From Pseudomonas aeruginosa PAO1 (GTDB lineage Bacteria > Pseudomonadota > Gammaproteobacteria > Pseudomonadales > Pseudomonadaceae): a stretch of 64,000 bases of DNA. Position 1 is the first letter of the stretch. Each line of letters begins with the position of its first letter. A program made the translations under genes and the position numbers. The stretch is from the NCBI RefSeq assembly GCF_000006765.1, contig NC_002516.2. The stretch is one strand, 5' to 3'. This document shows positions 33,126 through 59,589 of this stretch, piece by piece. The notes under the pieces were generated by a model. That model did not search any database and was not told the DNA's origin. It worked only from the letters and a program-made list of their open reading frames with translations.

Positions 33126-33764
33126 TCAGCGCGGCGGGTTCACCAGGTGGCGGTCGAAACCGCGCGCCACCAGGCGTTCCCAGGCGTCCATGACCTGCGC
33201 CGGGATCGGGCAGGCGACCTGGAAGCCCAGCGCCGGGTAACGCATGATGCGGTCAAGGTCGCCGACCATCTCGTCGATCACCCCGAGTACGCCGACCAGG
33301 TTCGAGATGCCGTCGGGAAATGCGTAGTCGGGCGCATCCACGTGTCCCTCCAGACCCGGCCAGCGGACCGGCAGGGTCAGCGCCACGCGGCGGATCGAGT
33401 TGGGCTTGGTGACGAAGGTCGCGCGGCGCAGGTCGGGGAACAGCTCGCGGGCGAAGGCGATGTTCTCGGCGAAGTTGGTCGCCCGCGGCTCGATCACGAT
33501 GAGGCTGTCGCTTACCCCGCGTGCCCTGGCGTGGCGGGCGAACAGCTCGGCTTCCGGCTCGACCCAGAGATGGCGCGTCCAGTGCCCGGTGTTGCCGGTG
33601 AACAGCAGGCGTTCGGCGAGGCCGCGTTCGAGCAGTTCGCAGGCGTGGTCGCAGACCCGCAGGTCGTAGGAGCCGCACACCACCAGCAGTTCGCAGGGCA
33701 CATGGCAGCGGCCCTGGCCGAGGAAGTCCCAGAGCAGCCGGGCATCTTGCAGGGTCGGGCTCAT
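33126..33764 (-). CDS. YdcF/DUF218 (SanA/ElyC-like) protein, 212 aa
   Basis: Motifs LLFTGNTG, EPEAELFA, IEPRATNFAENI and VTKPNSIRR. The start overlaps the HAD gene stop. Confidence 0.82.
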   Translation of the reverse strand: MSPTLQDARLLWDFLGQGRCHVPCELLVVCGSYDLRVCDHACELLERGLAERLLFTGNTGHWTRHLWVEPEAELFARHARARGVSDSLIVIEPRATNFAENIAFARELFPDLRRATFVTKPNSIRRVALTLPVRWPGLEGHVDAPDYAFPDGISNLVGVLGVIDEMVGDLDRIMRYPALGFQVACPIPAQVMDAWERLVARGFDRHLVNPPR

Positions 33765-34465
33765 GGGACGCCAACGCTCCTCTCGCTGCCGGTCGTGGCG
33801 GGGTGCCGATGCTGGCAGTACAGCCGGTCGTCTTCGCGGACGATCCGTAGCTCGCGGAAATCCCGGACCGACCAGCGCGCGCCGGCGGCGAGCAGGCCGC
33901 TCTCCTCGCCGATCGCCACGCAGGTCGCGCCGGCGGCACAGGCGGCCTGCACGCCGCTGAGGGAGTCTTCGAACACCAGGCAGCGCGACGGTGCCACGCC
34001 GAGCCTGGCCGCGGCCAGGCGATAGCCATCCGGAGCCGGCTTGCCGTGGACCACGTCGTCGCGGCTGACCAGGGTGCGGAACGCCGCCTGCAGGTCGTGC
34101 TGGCGCAGCACGTGGTCGATGCGTGCCGGCCAACTGCTGGTGACCAGCGCCAAGGGCACGTCCAGCCAACGCAGCTGGCGGATCACCGCGGCGACGCCGG
34201 GCAGCAGGGGACAGTCGGCGCCTTCCTCCAGCGCATCGACCCGTTGCTTGAGGATCCGCCGGCGCTCCATCGGCAGGTGGCCGAACAGATAGTCCAGGGT
34301 GTAGCCGCCCGGGCGACCGTGCACGTGGTCGCGCAGGCAGTCCGGGCCGAGCGCCACGCCCTGTTCGCCGGCGACCCGGCTCCAGGCCGCGGCGATGGCT
34401 TCGCGGGAGCTGATCAGGACGCCGTCCATGTCAAACAGAACGGCTGAAAACGCTAGTCGATGCAT
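33761..34465 (-). CDS. HAD-superfamily phosphatase (beta-PGM/sugar-phosphatase-like)
   Basis: Motifs FDMDGVL (DxD), LVTSS, GKPAPDGY and VFEDSLSGV. Confidence 0.9.
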   Translation of the reverse strand: MHRLAFSAVLFDMDGVLISSREAIAAAWSRVAGEQGVALGPDCLRDHVHGRPGGYTLDYLFGHLPMERRRILKQRVDALEEGADCPLLPGVAAVIRQLRWLDVPLALVTSSWPARIDHVLRQHDLQAAFRTLVSRDDVVHGKPAPDGYRLAAARLGVAPSRCLVFEDSLSGVQAACAAGATCVAIGEESGLLAAGARWSVRDFRELRIVREDDRLYCQHRHPATTGSERSVGVP

Positions 34466-35594
34466 CTCGGGCACTCTGTAGGGCAAGCCAGACCAGGACC
34501 GCGCCGCCGAGGGCGAACAGCGCCATGATCAGATAGGACCACTGCGGCAGGCCTTCGTACAGCCAGCCGGCGGCCGGACTGGCGAGGCCCATGGGCAGCG
34601 CTACCGCCAGAGAGTAGTAGATCCCCTGGGTCAGTACCCGCGCGCTTTCCGGCGCGTGGTCGCGGATGTAACGCATCACCGCGGCGTGGTAGGCGGCGAA
34701 GCTGAGGGCGTGCAGGCACTGGCCGAGGAGGATCGCGGCGAGGTGTTCGCTGCCGGCCAGCAGGCCCCAGCGCAGCGCCGCGCAAAGGCTGGAGAAGAGC
34801 ATCACCTGGAGCGCCGGGTGGCGGTCCAGGATGCGGTTGGAGACGGCGAAGAAGCTGATCTCGGCGATCACCGCCAGGCCCCAGAAGGCGCCGACCGAGA
34901 ACGACGAGTAGCCCAGCGTCTGCCAGCCCAGCGAGGCGGTGGTGAAGTACAGCGAGTGGCTCAGTTGGATCATTCCCGCCGCGGCGATGGCCAGCAGCAG
35001 GGGGCGTTGCCGGAGGATCCCGCGCAGGTCGGGACGGCGCCTGGCGCCCGGCAGCGGCGAGTCCGGACGGCGCAGGCTGCGGCGACGGAGGAACAGGCAG
35101 GCCAGCGCGGTGAGCAGCATCGTCAGGCCGACCAGGGCGGGCACCAGTTGCTGGCCGAAACGACCGAGCAGCAGGCCGCCCAGGGTCGCGGTGAGGATGA
35201 AGGCCAGCGAACCGACCGCGCGTACCCGCCCGTAGTTCTGCAGGGCGGCCTTGTCGCGCTTGAGCAGGTAGGACTCGGTGAGCGGCAGCACGCTGGTCCA
35301 GAACGCGCCGTAGAGCACGCTCAGGGCGATGAACAGCGGCAGGCCCTCGGCCAGCTGGAACAGCAGGGCGCAGGCGCCGGCCAGGGCCGCCAGCAGGGTC
35401 GCCAGGCGCAACTGGTCGATGCGCCAGTCGGCCACGTAGGTCAGCGCCACCCCGGCGATCACCTGCGGCCAGTAGGCCGCGGCGATCAACAGGCCGATCT
35501 GGCTGGCGCCGAAGCCCAGGCTGGCCAGCCAGGTCGGCCAGAACGGATAGATCAGCCCCTCGGCGGCGAAGTAGCCGGAAAAGATCAGGTACAT
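34431..35594 (-). CDS. MFS_1-like transporter (HcaT / nucleoside:H+ symporter-like), 387 aa
   Basis: 12 TMS, with YPFWPTWL, YGRVRAVGSLAF, AEISFF and LHALSFAAYH. Confidence 0.85.
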   Translation of the reverse strand: MYLIFSGYFAAEGLIYPFWPTWLASLGFGASQIGLLIAAAYWPQVIAGVALTYVADWRIDQLRLATLLAALAGACALLFQLAEGLPLFIALSVLYGAFWTSVLPLTESYLLKRDKAALQNYGRVRAVGSLAFILTATLGGLLLGRFGQQLVPALVGLTMLLTALACLFLRRRSLRRPDSPLPGARRRPDLRGILRQRPLLLAIAAAGMIQLSHSLYFTTASLGWQTLGYSSFSVGAFWGLAVIAEISFFAVSNRILDRHPALQVMLFSSLCAALRWGLLAGSEHLAAILLGQCLHALSFAAYHAAVMRYIRDHAPESARVLTQGIYYSLAVALPMGLASPAAGWLYEGLPQWSYLIMALFALGGAVLVWLALQSARDASTSVFSRSV

Positions 35595-35637
35595 GCCGGT
35601 TCCCGCGTCGCCGTGCCGGTTCGCTGCGGTTTGCGCC

Positions 35638-37362
35638 TCACTCGAAGCGCGCCCTGGCGAAGGCGTTCTCGCCCTTGCGCCAGACCAGCAGGGACTCGCC
35701 CAGCACCACCAGGTCGACCATGCCGTCCTCCAGCGCGCCGAGGGCGTCCTGCGGGGCGCAGACGATCGGTTCCTCGTGGCGGTTGAAGGAGGTGTTGATC
35801 AGCGCCGGCTGGCCGCTGCGGGCATGCCAGGCATGCAGCAGGGCGTGCATGAACGGATCGGCCTGCGGCCGGATGATCTGTGGCCGCGCGGTGCCGTCGA
35901 CATGCACCACCGCCGGGCAGCGCGCGCGGAAATCCGCATGGCAGTCGTAGGTCATGGTCATGTAGTCGGCCGCCACCTGGTGTTCACGCCAGCCAACGTA
36001 GCAAGCCTCGGCGTGTTCTACCGCGGTGACCGGGGCGAATGGCATGAACTCGGTGCGTTCCATGCGCTGGTTGAGCCAGTCGTTGGCGCTGGCATCGCCG
36101 GGATGGTAGACGATGCTGCGGTTGCACAAGGCGCGCGGACCGAACTCCATGCGGCCCTTGAACATGCCCAGCACCTGGTTTTCCCGCAGCGCTTCGACCA
36201 GCGTCTCGATCAGGTTGGCTGGCCGGCTGTAGGCCAGCTGCGGGTACTGGCTGGCGATCAGCTCGGCATTCTGCGCGGCGCTGCGCGCGTCCGGCCCGAG
36301 GGCCATGCTCGGCGCCGGGAAGCGCGTACCGTTCTCGCGATAGGCCACCGCCACCGCCGCGGCCAGGGCCAGGCCGCCGTCGCCCATGCAGGGCAGCACG
36401 TAGACATCGCGGACCCCGGGGATCTCGCGCAGGCGCTGGTTCAGCTTGACGTTGCCGAACACCCCGCCGGCCAGGCACAGGTTGGCACAACCGGTGCGCG
36501 CCACGTGCTCCCGGGCGATGGCCACCAGCAGGTCTTCGGAGTGCCGTTGCGCGGCGGCGGCGACATCCGCCGGGCGTTCCGCCGCGCAGCGTTGCAGCAG
36601 CGGATCGCTGTAGCCGTCGTAGGAGGGCAGGTACAGTTCGCCGCAGCGGGCGCGCAGGCGGCCGTTCTCCAGGCGGATCATGTCGTTCATCAGCGGCAGC
36701 AGCTTTTCCGCGTCGCCGAACGCCGCCAGGCCGGTGATCTTGCCTTCGTGGCGGTTCGGCTTGAAGCCGAGCAGGCGGGTGATGCGCCCGTAGAAGTAGC
36801 CCAGGCTGTCGACGCTGGTCTCGCGTTGCAGGACCGTCTCGCCGCCGTCGGCGCGGTAGTGGGTGACGGTGAGCGACTGGAAGTCGCCGCGGCCGTCGCA
36901 GGTGAGGGTCAGCGCCTCGTCGAACGGCGAGCAGACGAATGCGCCGAGGGCGTGGCATTCGTGATGGTCGATGTACTCGACCTTGCCGCGCAGGCCGTTG
37001 GCGCGGACGAAGGCATCGAATTCGCCGCGCTTGGCCTTGTCGTTGGCCATCTCGTCGGCGATCCGCTTGCGCAGGTGCGGCAGGCCCTCGGGACGCTCGC
37101 GGGCTTCCTCGAGGACCCGGTCCAGGTAGAGGTCGAGGTGCCGCCCGGCGTCGAACCCGGCGTTCCAGCCGTAGGCGATGCGGTCGATGTCGGCCAGGTC
37201 GATGCCGGCCTCGCCGAGCACATAGTCGATGGAGCGGCTCGGCCAGGCCTTGTGGTCCTTCTGGCGGGTGAAGCGCTCCTCGCTGGCGGCGGCGACGATC
37301 CCGCCGTCGCGCACCAGGCAGGCGCCGGCCAGGTCGTTGTTGGTGATCCCGAGAATGATCAT
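35638..37362 (-). CDS. O-carbamoyltransferase (NodU/CmcH/TobZ family), 574 aa
   Basis: Kae1-like HHECHA, TCDGRGD, LAGGVFGNVKLN and GDGG, plus YrdC-like RMEFGPRALCNRS, FMPFAP, HVDGTARPQ and INTSFNRHEEP. Confidence 0.94.
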   Translation of the reverse strand: MIILGITNNDLAGACLVRDGGIVAAASEERFTRQKDHKAWPSRSIDYVLGEAGIDLADIDRIAYGWNAGFDAGRHLDLYLDRVLEEARERPEGLPHLRKRIADEMANDKAKRGEFDAFVRANGLRGKVEYIDHHECHALGAFVCSPFDEALTLTCDGRGDFQSLTVTHYRADGGETVLQRETSVDSLGYFYGRITRLLGFKPNRHEGKITGLAAFGDAEKLLPLMNDMIRLENGRLRARCGELYLPSYDGYSDPLLQRCAAERPADVAAAAQRHSEDLLVAIAREHVARTGCANLCLAGGVFGNVKLNQRLREIPGVRDVYVLPCMGDGGLALAAAVAVAYRENGTRFPAPSMALGPDARSAAQNAELIASQYPQLAYSRPANLIETLVEALRENQVLGMFKGRMEFGPRALCNRSIVYHPGDASANDWLNQRMERTEFMPFAPVTAVEHAEACYVGWREHQVAADYMTMTYDCHADFRARCPAVVHVDGTARPQIIRPQADPFMHALLHAWHARSGQPALINTSFNRHEEPIVCAPQDALGALEDGMVDLVVLGESLLVWRKGENAFARARFE

Positions 37363-37433
37363 GCGGTGTCCTCTTGCGCGAACGGGTGGGGGGCGAGAGG
37401 CGTAATAGGTTGCATGGCACCGGGAGCCCAACA

Positions 37434-37488
37434 ACCTGCCAGATCTGGTCGCCTGCGAAATCTGGCAGGGCTACCGGATCTGGTAGCT
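37434..37488. promoter_or_regulatory. Three overlapping las/rhl (lux-type) boxes
   Basis: ACCTGCCAGATCTGGTCGCC (37434-53), GCCTGCGAAATCTGGCAGGG (37451-70) and GGCTACCGGATCTGGTAGCT (37469-88). The last two fit CT-N12-AG exactly. Confidence 0.75.
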
Positions 37489-37541
37489 GGACAGCCGTCG
37501 ACGGGCTTGCCGGCCATACCGGCCGGGCGCCCGCGCCGGCA

Positions 37542-40184
37542 TCAGAAGCTGTAGCTGAGGCGGCCGAACAGGATGCGCCCGTAGGGATCGGTGTAGCGCG
37601 GGTCGTAGCCGCTCTGGAAGGTGTAGGTCTGGTTGCTGAACGGCGGTTCGCGGTCGAACAGGTTCTTCACCCCGAGGGTCAGCCCCAGCGCGTGGCTGAG
37701 GCGGTAGCTGCCGGCCAGGTCCCAGAGGTTCCACGAGCCGACCTTGCCGTGGCTGGCGCGGTCGTAGTCGTTGTAGCCGCTGGTGTAGCGGTTGCTCAGG
37801 GTGGCCTGCCAGGCGTCGCGGCTCCAGGTGGCGTTGGCGACGTGCTTCCAGCGGGCGATCACGCCGACGCCCTGGAAGTCGCCGACGTTGTCCAGGTACT
37901 GGCCGCCGATCTGCTGCTGGAAGTCGTAGCGGGACACGTAGGTGCCTTGCAGGTCGAGCCCGAACTGCCCGTAGCGGCTGGCCGGGAAACGATAATCGAG
38001 GCTCAGGTCGACGCCGCTGGTCTTCACTTTGCCGAGGTTGGCCAGTCCGGTGACGACGTGATCGATCGAGCCGTCGGCCTTGCGCACGATGCGTCCGGCG
38101 TAGGCCTGCGGGTCGGCGAAGATCGCCGCTTCGGGAAACTCGGCGATCTGGTTGGCGATCCTGATCCACCAGAAGTCCAGGCCGACGGAAAGGTCGCGCA
38201 GCGGCTGGTAGACCAGGCCCAGGGTAACGTTGCGCGCGGTTTCCGGTCGCAGGTCGGTATTGCCGCCGGTGGCGTTGTAGAACTGCTGGGCGCAGTCGCG
38301 GTTGGCGATGCCGCCCTGGCTCGGCTGGCCGCCGGCGCACAGGCGCGGGTCGTCGTAGTTGGCGCTGGTATAGGTGGTGAAGGTCGGGTTGTACAGTTCG
38401 TACAGCGACGGCGCACGGAAACCTTCGCTGTAGGCGCCGCGCAGGACCAACTGGCGGAACGGCTGGAAGCGGAACGAATATTTCGGGTTGCTGGTGCTGC
38501 CGAAGTCGCTGTACTTGTCGTGGCGGATCGCCGCGCTGAGTTCCAGGCTGTCCAGCACCGGCACGTTGAGTTCGGCGTACTGCGCCTTCAGGTTGCGCTC
38601 GCCGCTGACCGTGGCGGCGGGATCGACGCCGAGGCTCTGCACGTTGCCGGCGAAGTCCTGGATGTCCTGGTGGAACGCTTCCTTGCGGAACTCGCCGCCC
38701 AGCGCCAGGGCCGCCGGCCCGGCGCCGAACCAGTCGCCGATCTCCCGGCTGGCGCGGGCGTCCAGGCCCTTGACGCGGCCGACCGAGGTACGGAAGTCGC
38801 CGCTCAGGGCATGGCTGCCGAGGTAGGCGAGGCCGGCGTCGGTCTGCGGCCCGAACGGGTTCAGCGTCCCGTTGGCGATGCCGAGGGCGGCGGCGCGATC
38901 ATCGACGTAGCCGCTGTGGATATGGTCGACCACCTTGTTCTGGTTGTACGAGGCGCCGATATCGTAGTCCCAGCCGGCGAACTGGCCGTCGAAGCCGAGC
39001 AGCAGGCGCTGGCCGGTGTTCTGCGAGGATTGCAGGCGCGGCCCGAGCACGCTCTGTCGCCAGTTGACCTCCACCGGCCGGCTCGGGTCGAGGACGAAGC
39101 CGCCGGGTCCGGGAGTGATGCCGTTGCCGGGATAGAAGGCGGTGCCGGGATCGATCTGCAGGCCGGTGAGGGTCCCTGGGCCGACCTGGGTAGCGTTGTC
39201 GCTGCGCGACCAGAAGTACTCCAGGCTGACGTTGTGCTCGTCGGCCAGCTTGCCGGTGGCGCGGCTGAACACCGAGGTCTTCTCGGTTTCCGGCACCAGG
39301 TCGAGGTAGCGCCACAGGCTCTGCCGGCAGATGCCGTTGCGCGGAATCAGGTCGGCGCCCTTGCAACCGCCGGCGGCCAGCGGATTGCTGGCGTTGGCGC
39401 CCTGGCTCCAGTTGCCGGGGAAGGCGGTGCCGGAGCTGTAGTCGAGGCCGCGTCCCGGCTGGTAGTTGTAGGTGTAGCCGCGGTCCTTGGCGCCGAGGCG
39501 CTCCTGCTTGTCGTAGTTGGCCACCGCGAAGACATTGAAGCGATCCTCCTCCAGCTCGCCGAAGCCCCAGCTAGCGCTGACGTTGCGCTGGTTGCCGCCG
39601 CCGTCGTGGGTGGGGGAGGCGTAGCCGCTGTCGAAGCGGCCTTCGTTCAGGCTCTTGCGGGTGATGAAGTTGATCACCCCGCCGATGGCATCGGTGCCGT
39701 ACAGCGCGGAGGCGCCGTCGCGCAGCACCTCGACCCGGTCGATGGCGGCGAAGGGAATGGTGTTGAGATCCACCGCGGAGCCGTCGATGGCATTGTTCGC
39801 CAGGCGCCGGCCGTTGAGCAGCACCAGGGTCTTGTTCGCGCCGATTCCGCGCAGGTCGGCGAACGAGGCGCCGCCGGTGGCGCTGCCGACCGAGCGACTG
39901 GAGTTGTATACGCCCTGGTTGCCGGAAAGCCGGCCGATCAGTTCCTCGGTGCTGGTCACGCCCTGTTGGCGCAGCTCCTCGGCGCGCAGGACGCTGATCG
40001 GCACCGCGGTTTCCGCATCGACCCGGCGGATCGCGCTGCCGGTCACCTCGATTCGTTGCAACTGGACCGTGGGCGGGTCGACAGGCGCCTGTTCCTCCGC
40101 CGCGGCGGCGCTGCCGGGAGCGAGCTGCAGGGCCAGCAGCAGGGCGGCGCCCAGCGGCGCGTCGGTGTGGAGCGATCGGTGCAT
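37542..40184 (-). CDS. TonB-dependent receptor, 880 aa, no STN domain
   Basis: Signal peptide, TonB box IEVTGSAI, plug [17 protein letters not shown] and a C-terminal YSF. Confidence 0.92.
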
Positions 40185-40459
40185 GGTCGGGGCATCCCTT
40201 GTTCCGGTGTGTCCAGGGATGTCCGTCGAGCCGGGGGATTTTCCAGGGACGGCTTAGACCTTTGCGCCATGAGTTTATGTCCGCTGGGAACAAGCCCTGC
40301 CGTCGCGCCTTTCGTCGGCGGGCCGGAGCGGCAGAACCAGTCCCCTCTGCCGAGGTCGAAAAGCAGGCGTCGCGGCGGTGCTGCGGCGTCCTTTCTTCAG
40401 CTACATTTTTCTTTCAGCAGTCGTTCCCATCATCCAGGGCAGCACCCAAGGGGCAGATC

Positions 40460-45551: not shown

Positions 45552-46982
45552 ATGAGCAATAACAACGAGGCGTCACGCCCGAAGATCGAAGTGCGTTCGA
45601 TCGATTACGTTCCCCGCCACGAGCGTCACGGCAAGGTCTGGCACCAGGCGCCGTTCTGGTTCACCGGCAATTTCGTACTCACCACCATGGTCACCGGCTT
45701 CACCGGGCCGGCCCTCGGCCTGGGGGCGCTGTACTCGATCCTGGCGATCGTCCTCGGCGTCTGCTTCGGCACCTTCTTCATGGCCTTCCATGCCAACCAG
45801 GGTCCGCGCATGGGCTTGCCGCAGATGATCCAGTCGCGTGCCCAGTTCGGCCTGCGCGGGGCCATCGTGCCGTTCGCCGCGGTGGTCTTCGTCTATATCG
45901 GCTTCAACGTGTTCAACGTGATCCTCGCCACCGACGCGATCAACACCGTGCTGCCGGGACACCGCGCGCCCTGGTACGTCCTGCTGATCGGCGTGGCGGT
46001 GTTGCTCGCCATCGTCGGCCACGACCTGCTGCATACCGTGCAGCGCTGGCTGACCTACGTGATGATCGCGGTGTTCGGAGTCCTCACCGTCAGCGCGCTG
46101 CGCAGCCTCGAAGCGGACGCGGCGCTGGGCGGTACGCCGGCGTTCTCCTGGAGCGCGTTCCTGGTCCAACTGTCGGCCGCCGCCGGCTACCAGATCAGCT
46201 ATGCGGTCTACGTCTCCGACTACTCCCGCTACCTGCCGCACGAAACGCCGACCCGCAAGGTGATCTTCTGGACCTACCTGGGCGCCGCCGGTTCGGCGCT
46301 CTGGCTGATGTCGCTGGGCGCATTCCTGGCCTCGGCATTGCCGGCGCCGGACGCCATCGGCAGCGTGCGCGAGGTGGGCAACCGGCTGTATCCCGGCTTC
46401 GGCACCTTCACCGTGCTGATCGCCGTCCCGGCCCTGGTGGGGATCATGGCGGTCAACTGCTATGGCGCCATGCTCACCAGCCTCAGCGCCATCGATGCCT
46501 TCCGCAAGGTCACTCCGACCCTCAACCTGCGCGTCACCGGGATCGGCGTGATCGCCCTGGTGGTATTCGGCGTGGCCCTGTCAATCCCGGAAAGCTACCT
46601 GGGCAGCTTCAACACCTTCGTCCTGCTGATGCTGTACTTCCTGGTGCCCTGGACCGCGGTCAACCTGGTGGACTTCTACTTCGTGCGCAACGGTCACTAC
46701 GCGATCAGCGAAATCTTCAATCCCGAAGGCATCTACGGTCACTGGGGCCGACCGGGGTTGAGCGCCTACCTGGCCGGGTTGCTGGCGATGGTCCCGTTCA
46801 TGTCCCTGAGCTTCTACAGCGGTCCCTTCGCCGTGGCGCTGGGCGGCGCCGACGTCGCCTTCGTGGTCGGCCTGCTGGTGGCCGGCGCGGTCTATGCCTT
46901 CATGTGCCGGGCCCTGGACCTGGAGGCGGAACGACGGCTCGCCACCCTCGGCGAGCGCCTGCTGGAAGAGGGGGGCGCCTGA
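45552..46982 (+). CDS. NCS1 purine-cytosine permease family transporter, 476 aa
   Basis: Motifs FWFTGN, GPRMGLPQMIQSRAQFG and SDYSRYLP; 12 TMS. Confidence 0.88.
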   Translation: MSNNNEASRPKIEVRSIDYVPRHERHGKVWHQAPFWFTGNFVLTTMVTGFTGPALGLGALYSILAIVLGVCFGTFFMAFHANQGPRMGLPQMIQSRAQFGLRGAIVPFAAVVFVYIGFNVFNVILATDAINTVLPGHRAPWYVLLIGVAVLLAIVGHDLLHTVQRWLTYVMIAVFGVLTVSALRSLEADAALGGTPAFSWSAFLVQLSAAAGYQISYAVYVSDYSRYLPHETPTRKVIFWTYLGAAGSALWLMSLGAFLASALPAPDAIGSVREVGNRLYPGFGTFTVLIAVPALVGIMAVNCYGAMLTSLSAIDAFRKVTPTLNLRVTGIGVIALVVFGVALSIPESYLGSFNTFVLLMLYFLVPWTAVNLVDFYFVRNGHYAISEIFNPEGIYGHWGRPGLSAYLAGLLAMVPFMSLSFYSGPFAVALGGADVAFVVGLLVAGAVYAFMCRALDLEAERRLATLGERLLEEGGA

Positions 46983-58338: not shown

Positions 58339-58980
58339 TTACTCCGCGGTAGGCAGGGCGCGCAGCACGGCACGCACCGGGCTGGCATCGAGGTGGGTGA
58401 ATTTCAGCGGCAGGGCGAGTAGTTCGTAGTCGCCGGCGGGCACGTCGTCGAGGACCACGCCTTCGAGGATCGCCATGCCGTGGCGGCCCACCGCGTGGTG
58501 GGCGTCGAGGGTCTTGGAGTGCTGGGGGTCGAGCGACGGGGTGTCGATGCCGACCAGCCTGACGCCGCGCTCGGCGAGGCACTCGATGGTGGCCGGAGCG
58601 ATAGCGCAGAAGCCTTCCGGCCAGTTCGCCGGGACCCGTTCGAAGGTCCGTAGCAGCACCCGCGAGGGCAGGTCGTCGAGCTGGCCGGCGAGGTGTTCGG
58701 GGGTCACCAGCGGGTTAGCGCCGATACAGTGGATCACCCGGCACGGTCCCATGTAGATGTCCAGCGGCACCTGGCCGATGGGCAGGCCGTCGGCGCGGTA
58801 GTGCAGGGGGCCGTCGACGTGGGCGCCGGTATGCGGCGAAAGGGTGATCCGGCCGACGTTGACCGGGCACTGCTCGTCCAGCCGCGCCGCCCATTCCTGC
58901 TGGAACGGCGTGTCGCCGGGCCAGGTCGGCGTGTTCGGGTCGAGGGCGGGACTGATGTCCCAGTAGCGGAGCGAAGTCAT
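58339..58980 (-). CDS. kynB: Kynurenine formamidase (cyclase family), 213 aa
   Basis: Motifs [19 protein letters not shown] and DASPVRAVL. Confidence 0.95.
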
Positions 58981-59027
58981 TGTTTTTCTCCGGAAGTCCA
59001 GCGAATGATAATGAACGAGATTTCGGA

Positions 59028-59079
59028 GAATTTTCGTGCGAAATGCAAGGTCGCATGGCAGTCTGTTCGCACAAAATTC
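59028..59079. promoter_or_regulatory. Inverted repeat in the kynB-kynR divergent region (probable KynR site)
   Basis: GAATTTTCGTGCGAA ... TTCGCACAAAATTC. Confidence 0.5.
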
Positions 59080-59112
59080 GAAGATAGCTATTCATTCTGA
59101 TAGGAATTGCAC

Positions 59113-59589
59113 ATGTCCCTGGACGCCATCGATCTGCGCATTCTCCGTCACCTGCAGCAGGACGGGCGGATGAGCAACCAGGACCTGGCGGAGAAGGTCT
59201 CCCTCTCGCCATCCGCCTGCCTGCGCCGGCTGCGCCTGCTGGAAAGCGAGGGGATCATCCGCGGCTACTCGGTGGAACTGGATGCCGAGCGACTGGGCGT
59301 GGAGCTGGAAGCCATCGTCCATGTGTCGCTGCGCCAGGACGTCGAGGGTTGGCACGAGGCGTTCATCGCCAGGGTCCGGGACTGGCCGGAGGTGGTCACC
59401 GCCTATGTGGTGACCGGCGCCACCAACTATGTGCTACGGGTCCGGGCGCGCAACCTCAAGCACTATTCGGACTTCATCGTGAACAAGCTGAACCGCGCCG
59501 CCGGCGTCACCGACATCCGCTCGGAAATCGTCCTGCAGGAGATCAAGGCCGGTGCCGACCTGCTCGACCTGGTGAACCTGAAGAGTTGA
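59113..59589 (+). CDS. kynR: Lrp/AsnC regulator of kynBU, 158 aa
   Basis: LDAIDLRILRHLQQDGRMSNQDLAEKVSLSPSACLRR is an Lrp HTH; it is divergent from kynB. Confidence 0.92.
   Translation: MSLDAIDLRILRHLQQDGRMSNQDLAEKVSLSPSACLRRLRLLESEGIIRGYSVELDAERLGVELEAIVHVSLRQDVEGWHEAFIARVRDWPEVVTAYVVTGATNYVLRVRARNLKHYSDFIVNKLNRAAGVTDIRSEIVLQEIKAGADLLDLVNLKS

Follow-up and report, generated by a model that had tools for sequence, protein, structure and literature searches.

Quorum-sensing control of the Pseudomonas aeruginosa PAO1 gene PA2069 by LasR and RhlR, its transcription start and two boxes in its upstream region have already been published, and the layout described here is an incremental detail of that picture. 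The question that this locus raises is why three las-rhl boxes should stand side by side in front of one operon, and which of them the two receptors use. We examined it in a window of 64 kb, meaning the whole stretch of DNA analysed, which comprises 64,000 nucleotides of contig NC_002516.2; positions refer to this window unless stated otherwise. Taking all lines of evidence together, we consider it probable that the array serves the PA2069-PA2066 promoter as its quorum-sensing operator region, although the best RhlR box lies outside the usual activating position, which counts against this explanation.

The three boxes and their conservation

The sequence-only reading described three lux-type boxes at 17- and 18-bp spacing, two with CT-N12-AG ends and one with CT-N12-CG, and the sequence reads exactly so (Table 1). 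The array sits in the 179-bp spacer between PA2070 and PA2069. With start-to-start distances of 17 and 18 bp, the three units were placed by the repeat finder in one direct-repeat family, 71-82% alike among themselves, and the array as a whole forms an imperfect 51-bp dyad with box 2 at its centre (direct repeat D1 and inverted repeats I1 and I3). Dyad symmetry is greatest in box 3, where seven of eight pairs match. The array had also been called overlapping; this is true of the flanks of the 20-bp extended boxes, which share 2-3 bases, but the 16-bp cores merely abut, with gaps of 1 and 2 bp and zero core overlap. Deviations from the CT-N12-AG ends, like that of box 1, also occur among published validated sites (Wurtzel 2012, PMC3460626).

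Table 1. Positions of the boxes, promoter elements and genes at the PA2069 locus
Feature	Position	Strand	Remarks
Box 1	37436-37451	minus	CTGCCAGATCTGGTCG; CT-N12-CG; coding strand CGACCAGATCTGGCAG
Box 2	37453-37468	minus	CTGCGAAATCTGGCAG; exact CT-N12-AG; coding strand CTGCCAGATTTCGCAG
Box 3	37471-37486	minus	CTACCGGATCTGGTAG; exact CT-N12-AG; coding strand CTACCAGATCCGGTAG
Whole array (20-bp extended boxes)	37434-37488	minus	upstream of the PA2069 promoter
-35-like hexamer TTGTTG	37429-37434	minus	-35 to -30, directly after box 1; putative, placed from the mapped start
TATTAC hexamer	37402-37407	minus	-8 to -3 from the mapped start
Transcription start, PA2069-PA2066 operon	37399	minus	Wurtzel 2012 Table S3 (PMC3460626); 37-nt 5' leader
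PA2069 (PA14_37745), carbamoyltransferase, NodU/CmcH type, 574 aa	35638-37362	minus	99% identical to P. aeruginosa protein
PA2068, MFS transporter	34431-35594	minus	
PA2067, HAD-family phosphatase	33761-34429	minus	
PA2066, YdcF/DUF218 protein	33126-33764	minus	last gene of the transcription unit
PA2070, TonB-dependent receptor	37542-40184	minus	upstream, outside the operon
Strong G+C-rich hairpin	37490-37543	minus	begins at the PA2070 stop codon; no U run after

The boxes had been likened to those of lasB, rhlA and phzA1, a likeness that holds against the sequences quoted in papers. Specifically, 15 of the 16 positions of box 2 agree with the rhlA box and 14 of the 16 of box 3 with the phzA1 box, while box 1 shares 13 of 16 positions with the lasB box, as counted by eye, and 15 of 16 with the rahU box.

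Taken alone, the CT-N12-AG pattern shows no enrichment in the 64-kb window (158 matches versus 195 expected) and is thus uninformative, and we therefore built two weight matrices from published sites, leaving the PA2069 locus out of both. The RhlR matrix covers 21 nt and was derived from 25 RhlR ChIP-seq motifs (Keegan 2023), and the LasR matrix covers 16 nt and was derived from 31 LasR sites (Wurtzel 2012 Table S4). When both strands of the 64 kb were scored with the RhlR matrix, box 2 ranked first (19.4 bits), box 1 second (13.6 bits) and box 3 about sixth (9.4 bits); boxes 1 and 2 fall inside the range of the training sites' own scores (12.8-31 bits) and box 3 falls below it. With the LasR matrix, box 3 was the best hit in the window (19.9 bits), and boxes 1 and 2, at 17.4 bits each, took the third and fourth places; all three lie inside the training range of 9.9-23.6 bits. 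In 300 shuffles of the window with dinucleotide composition preserved, neither matrix ever found three such sites within 60 bp. The RhlR and LasR training lists overlap heavily, however, so that the matrices separate the two regulators poorly.

The LasR matrix also drew attention to sites elsewhere in the window. The second-ranking one, CTATTCATTCTGATAG at 59088-59103 (context 58980-59113), receives 19.4 bits from the LasR matrix and 13.1 bits from the RhlR matrix, and lies between the divergent genes kynB (arylformamidase, 58342-58980, minus strand) and an Lrp-family regulator gene (59113-59589, plus strand). kynB (PA2081) is a LasR ChIP-chip target recorded with 'no match to consensus motif' (Wurtzel 2012, PMC3460626), and this las-type box, which precedes the kynB transcription start by about 95 bp, may be the missing LasR site. 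Another match, ATAGCTGATCTGGTAG at 46187-46202 on the minus strand (14.2 bits), apparently lies within a long ORF (45552-46982, plus strand).

P. paraeruginosa ATCC 9027 has preserved all three boxes; box 1 is identical there, box 2 carries two changes and box 3 one, with all CT/AG ends retained. Within P. aeruginosa, 10 contigs show no variation inside the boxes. In a selection test, the three P. paraeruginosa substitutions preserved the matrix scores weakly better than random changes, a difference that was not significant (p about 0.09-0.14). Similarity between the two species starts about 10 bp upstream of box 3. PA2070 is missing at the P. paraeruginosa locus (contig L001, 5514-6000, compared with window 37363-40198), where fusA2 (96% identical at the protein level) lies immediately next to the PA2069 orthologue in divergent orientation.

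The gene order carbamoyltransferase-MFS-HAD-YdcF is shared by about 20 further Pseudomonas species and by Vreelandella and Xylophilus (loci L001-L017, L021, L022, L024 and L074 were surveyed, the counterpart in the window being 33126-37362). No boxes were found upstream of the orthologues, which are about 72% identical, in the roughly 20 other Pseudomonas species, and the PA2070 receptor gene was found in no flank of the other cassette loci within at most 6 kb on each side. Since the boxes occur in P. aeruginosa and P. paraeruginosa and not upstream of the other Pseudomonas orthologues, the array is, judged from these sequence comparisons, a lineage-specific addition of these two species by which an older cassette was put under quorum-sensing control. 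The carbamoyltransferase-HAD pair was also seen in actinomycetes and Vibrionaceae.

PA2066 (YdcF) has been put forward as a putative antibacterial effector carried by Hcp2, with PA2067 as its possible immunity protein (Howard 2021). The broad conservation of its linkage to carbamoyltransferase and transporter genes suggests that they share a small-molecule pathway, instead of or besides an effector role.

Promoter, binding and expression

PA14_37745, PA14_37760, PA14_37770 and PA14_37780, corresponding to PA2069-PA2066, form one transcription unit (Wurtzel 2012, PMC3460626). In PA14 coordinates, its transcription start is at 3364801 and the ORF start at 3364838 (Wurtzel 2012 Table S3, PMC3460626); the position of this start in the window was cross-checked via the published -52 position of box 1, and it falls inside the interval of about 37395-37420 that had been predicted. 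Counted from the start, box 1 spans -52 to -37 (centre -44.5), which is the position of most mapped LasR and RhlR boxes, box 2 spans -69 to -54 (centre -61.5) and box 3 spans -87 to -72 (centre -79.5). The spacings of 17 and 18 bp amount to 1.62 and 1.71 helical turns, so that neighbouring dimers would be rotated by about 225-255 degrees and their 20-bp footprints would just touch.

The TATTAC hexamer that had been proposed as a -10-like element is present but lies 4 nt too close to the start for a normal -10, the slot of which (-12 to -7) reads AACCTA. The promoter scanner found no match to the sigma-70 consensus in 37200-37700, as expected for an activator-dependent promoter. Within the PA2069 leader, a run of six C residues on the minus strand occupies 37388-37393 (+7 to +12); it is five C residues long in the P. 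aeruginosa contigs L071 and L075, one of which is a low-quality assembly.

A promoter separate from that of the upstream receptor had been suggested, and this is borne out by the operon's own mapped start and by the RNA data, in which all four operon genes are RhlR-dependent (wild type/rhlR mutant, 204/5, 115/7, 195/18 and 110/16) and PA2070 is not (27/15). The G+C-rich hairpin that begins at the PA2070 stop codon is very stable and may represent a 3' end that is factor-dependent or atypical.

Published binding data place the two receptors on this region. Box 1, CGACCAGATCTGGCAG, was first described as a 'LasR binding site' at -52 to -37 (Wurtzel 2012 Table S4, PMC3460626), and the LasR site at PA2069 was checked by a lacZ fusion and a gel shift in the same work. 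The search was confined to the vicinity of -52, with box 1 being chosen by position and not by footprinting, and the gel-shift fragment extended over about 37375-37548, so that all three boxes were inside it. ChIP-seq peaks at PA2069 have also been listed for nine factors, LasR being one of them (Huang 2019), and the PA2069 promoter was not reported in LasR ChIP-chip (Gilbert 2009, as tabulated by Wurtzel 2012, PMC3460626).

For RhlR, the MEME motif given for the ChIP-seq site 'PA14_37745 operon' is the reverse complement of 37451-37471, i.e. box 2 (Keegan 2023 Table 1, PMC10732425), and box 2 is identical to the 16-nt core of the 'rhl-box consensus' oligonucleotide, which RhlR binds with a Kd of 23 nM (McCready 2019). 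RhlR binding at the site fell from 424 in the wild type to 112 on mutation of pqsE, 37 on mutation of rhlI and 5 on mutation of rhlR (Keegan 2023, PMC10732425), and in a repeat RhlR ChIP-seq it was 34 without and 409 with C4-HSL (2026 J Bacteriol paper). The published peak centre, PA14 3364761, corresponds to about position 37439 in the window. When peak centres were calibrated against box centres for nine other promoters that two papers have in common, the peaks were shifted towards higher coordinates by a mean of 19.6 bp (sd 19); box 2 fits this offset best (+21.5), and boxes 1 (+4.5) and 3 (+39.5) are within about one sd, the uncertainty of the peak centre being as large as the box spacing.

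Expression at the locus changed 34-fold with RhlR, 14.6-fold with RhlI and 1.5-fold with PqsE (Keegan 2023, PMC10732425). Among the 40 sites of that study, the ChIP enrichment of 424 is among the lowest and the expression change among the largest. In the absence of lasR and all other quorum-sensing genes, PA2069 was induced 36.8-fold by RhlR alone and 223.9-fold by RhlR plus PqsE (Letizia 2022).

These data agree with the sequence-only reading in that LuxR-type operators receive LasR and RhlR(-PqsE) input here, LasR by gel shift and lacZ fusion and RhlR by a ChIP-seq peak that depends on C4-HSL and PqsE. By their form, their matrix scores and the regulation of the genes downstream, the three boxes are las-rhl boxes, box 1 alone having the usual position; the published ChIP-seq (RhlR) and gel shift (LasR) show binding at the level of the region.

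Proposed use of the boxes by LasR and RhlR

In the explanation that we favour, transcription begins at the published start, 37399, and box 1, abutting a weak -35, is the most likely site at which a bound dimer recruits RNA polymerase, because its centre at -44.5 is the usual seat of LuxR-type activators. According to the published data, the main activator in vivo is RhlR with C4-HSL, which suffices in the absence of LasR and is strengthened by PqsE. LasR binds the fragment in vitro in the gel shift and also acts indirectly, through its activation of rhlR. Box 2 is nearest to the RhlR consensus and box 3 most like the published LasR sites, and both may be auxiliary, either raising the local occupancy of activator or offering separate landing places for RhlR and LasR, so that a promoter with poor core elements could be fired by either regulator.

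The auxiliary boxes could also be occupied together with box 1. Two or three LuxR-type dimers would then stand at once on a compact platform, for example RhlR-PqsE on box 2 and LasR or RhlR on boxes 1 and 3, with the main activator working from -61.5. If true, LuxR-type regulators would have a promoter architecture that has not been described for them, and this might account for why poor core elements and a low ChIP signal go together with a fold-induction that ranks among the largest of the RhlR regulon. We nevertheless regard such a platform as unlikely; the low RhlR ChIP enrichment (424) fits poorly with dense cooperative occupancy by several dimers, from which a switch-like response had been predicted, and argues weakly against it. 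A PqsE dimer bridging two RhlR dimers on adjacent boxes was also considered and was dropped, as the PqsE:RhlR complex is 2:2 (Borgert 2022).

Among the rival explanations, the one that survives best, although we still hold it to be doubtful, is that the two receptors act through OR logic, with LasR on box 1 (or box 3) and RhlR on box 2, as alternatives and not simultaneously, so that the operon is on in lasR-defective strains. Two independent papers indeed give LasR and RhlR different boxes, the RhlR matrix favours box 2 and the LasR matrix box 3, RhlR is sufficient without LasR, and the extended footprints have flank bases in common. However, the preference of the matrices carries little discrimination, given the heavy overlap of the site lists, the assignment of box 1 to LasR was made by its nearness to -52 and not from a footprint, and the LasR gel-shift fragment carried all three boxes.

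We think it improbable that box 1 is the single working box, with boxes 2 and 3 being remnants of a local duplication of about 17 bp that contribute little. The units are direct repeats of 71-82% likeness, as a duplication would leave them, but selection for the same binding site would also yield similar units. One box suffices at most LasR and RhlR promoters, ChIP occupancy is low and the matrix scores show no significant excess conservation; against this, box 2 is the window's closest match to the RhlR consensus and is the MEME motif under the peak, and the CT/AG ends of all three boxes are kept across two species.

A role at the RNA level, in which the palindromes would terminate or stabilise the receptor transcript at its 3' end, is highly improbable, for although minus-strand RNA of 37400-37545 folds at -74.8 kcal/mol (z -3.6) and the array itself makes a long hairpin (37439-37483), such a hairpin is inevitable from three abutting palindromes, the scanner found no U run and no terminator-like site in 37200-37700 that would qualify as an intrinsic terminator, there is no relevant Rfam match, P. 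paraeruginosa has the array but lacks the receptor gene at this locus, and published protein binding accounts for the sequence.

We thus return to the array as the quorum-sensing operator region of the operon. If its boxes are occupied together, it would be a compact natural case of signal integration by two quorum-sensing receptors; if they are not, it would be an ordinary single-box promoter plus two spare copies. PA2069 is among the most strongly RhlR-induced genes of P. aeruginosa, and its promoter is therefore a useful quorum-sensing read-out.

Comparison with known promoters

What our analysis adds to the published work is that the 'LasR site' and the 'RhlR motif' are two different, adjacent boxes, that a third box lies alongside, that all three are kept in P. 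paraeruginosa, and that the array is absent from this cassette in other species. In the searchable literature, outside which some older papers lie, we found no mention of box 3 or of the abutting three-box layout and no data on the need for individual boxes in activation, and a phrase search for tandem or multiple lux or las boxes found no paper. No searchable main text contains the exact sequence of box 1 or of box 3, that of box 1 being given only in one supplement (Wurtzel 2012, PMC3460626), where PA2069 is not listed as a multi-site promoter (Table S4).

Compared with the single-box promoters (rhlA, phzA1, rahU and lasB site 1), the PA2069 boxes share the 16-bp CT-N12-AG dyad at 13-15 of 16 identical positions, box 1 takes the same -52 to -37 position as most mapped sites, and here too RhlR binds the region in vivo, LasR binds it in vitro and activation depends on AHL. 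PA2069 differs from them in having three boxes, in that the best RhlR match is centred at -61.5 and not beside the -35, and in that the distal end of box 1 is CG, not CT. For other bacterial activators, the class II and class I positions are close to -44.5 and -61.5, respectively. By analogy with these CRP-type positions, the centres of boxes 1 and 2 would lie near the places from which such activators work, and that of box 3, at -79.5, would be off the usual phase.

Single boxes had been called typical and a stacked triple array unusual, which is broadly true, but promoters with several boxes are known: PA3326 (clpP2/aze) has four LasR sites and lasB has two, so that these promoters, like that of PA2069, have more than one LuxR-type box per start (Wurtzel 2012 Table S4, PMC3460626). 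In PA3326 the spacing is about 30-33 bp and in lasB 61 bp, in both cases near whole helical turns and with room between the dimers, whereas in PA2069, with its spacing of 17-18 bp, the sites abut and face different sides of the helix.
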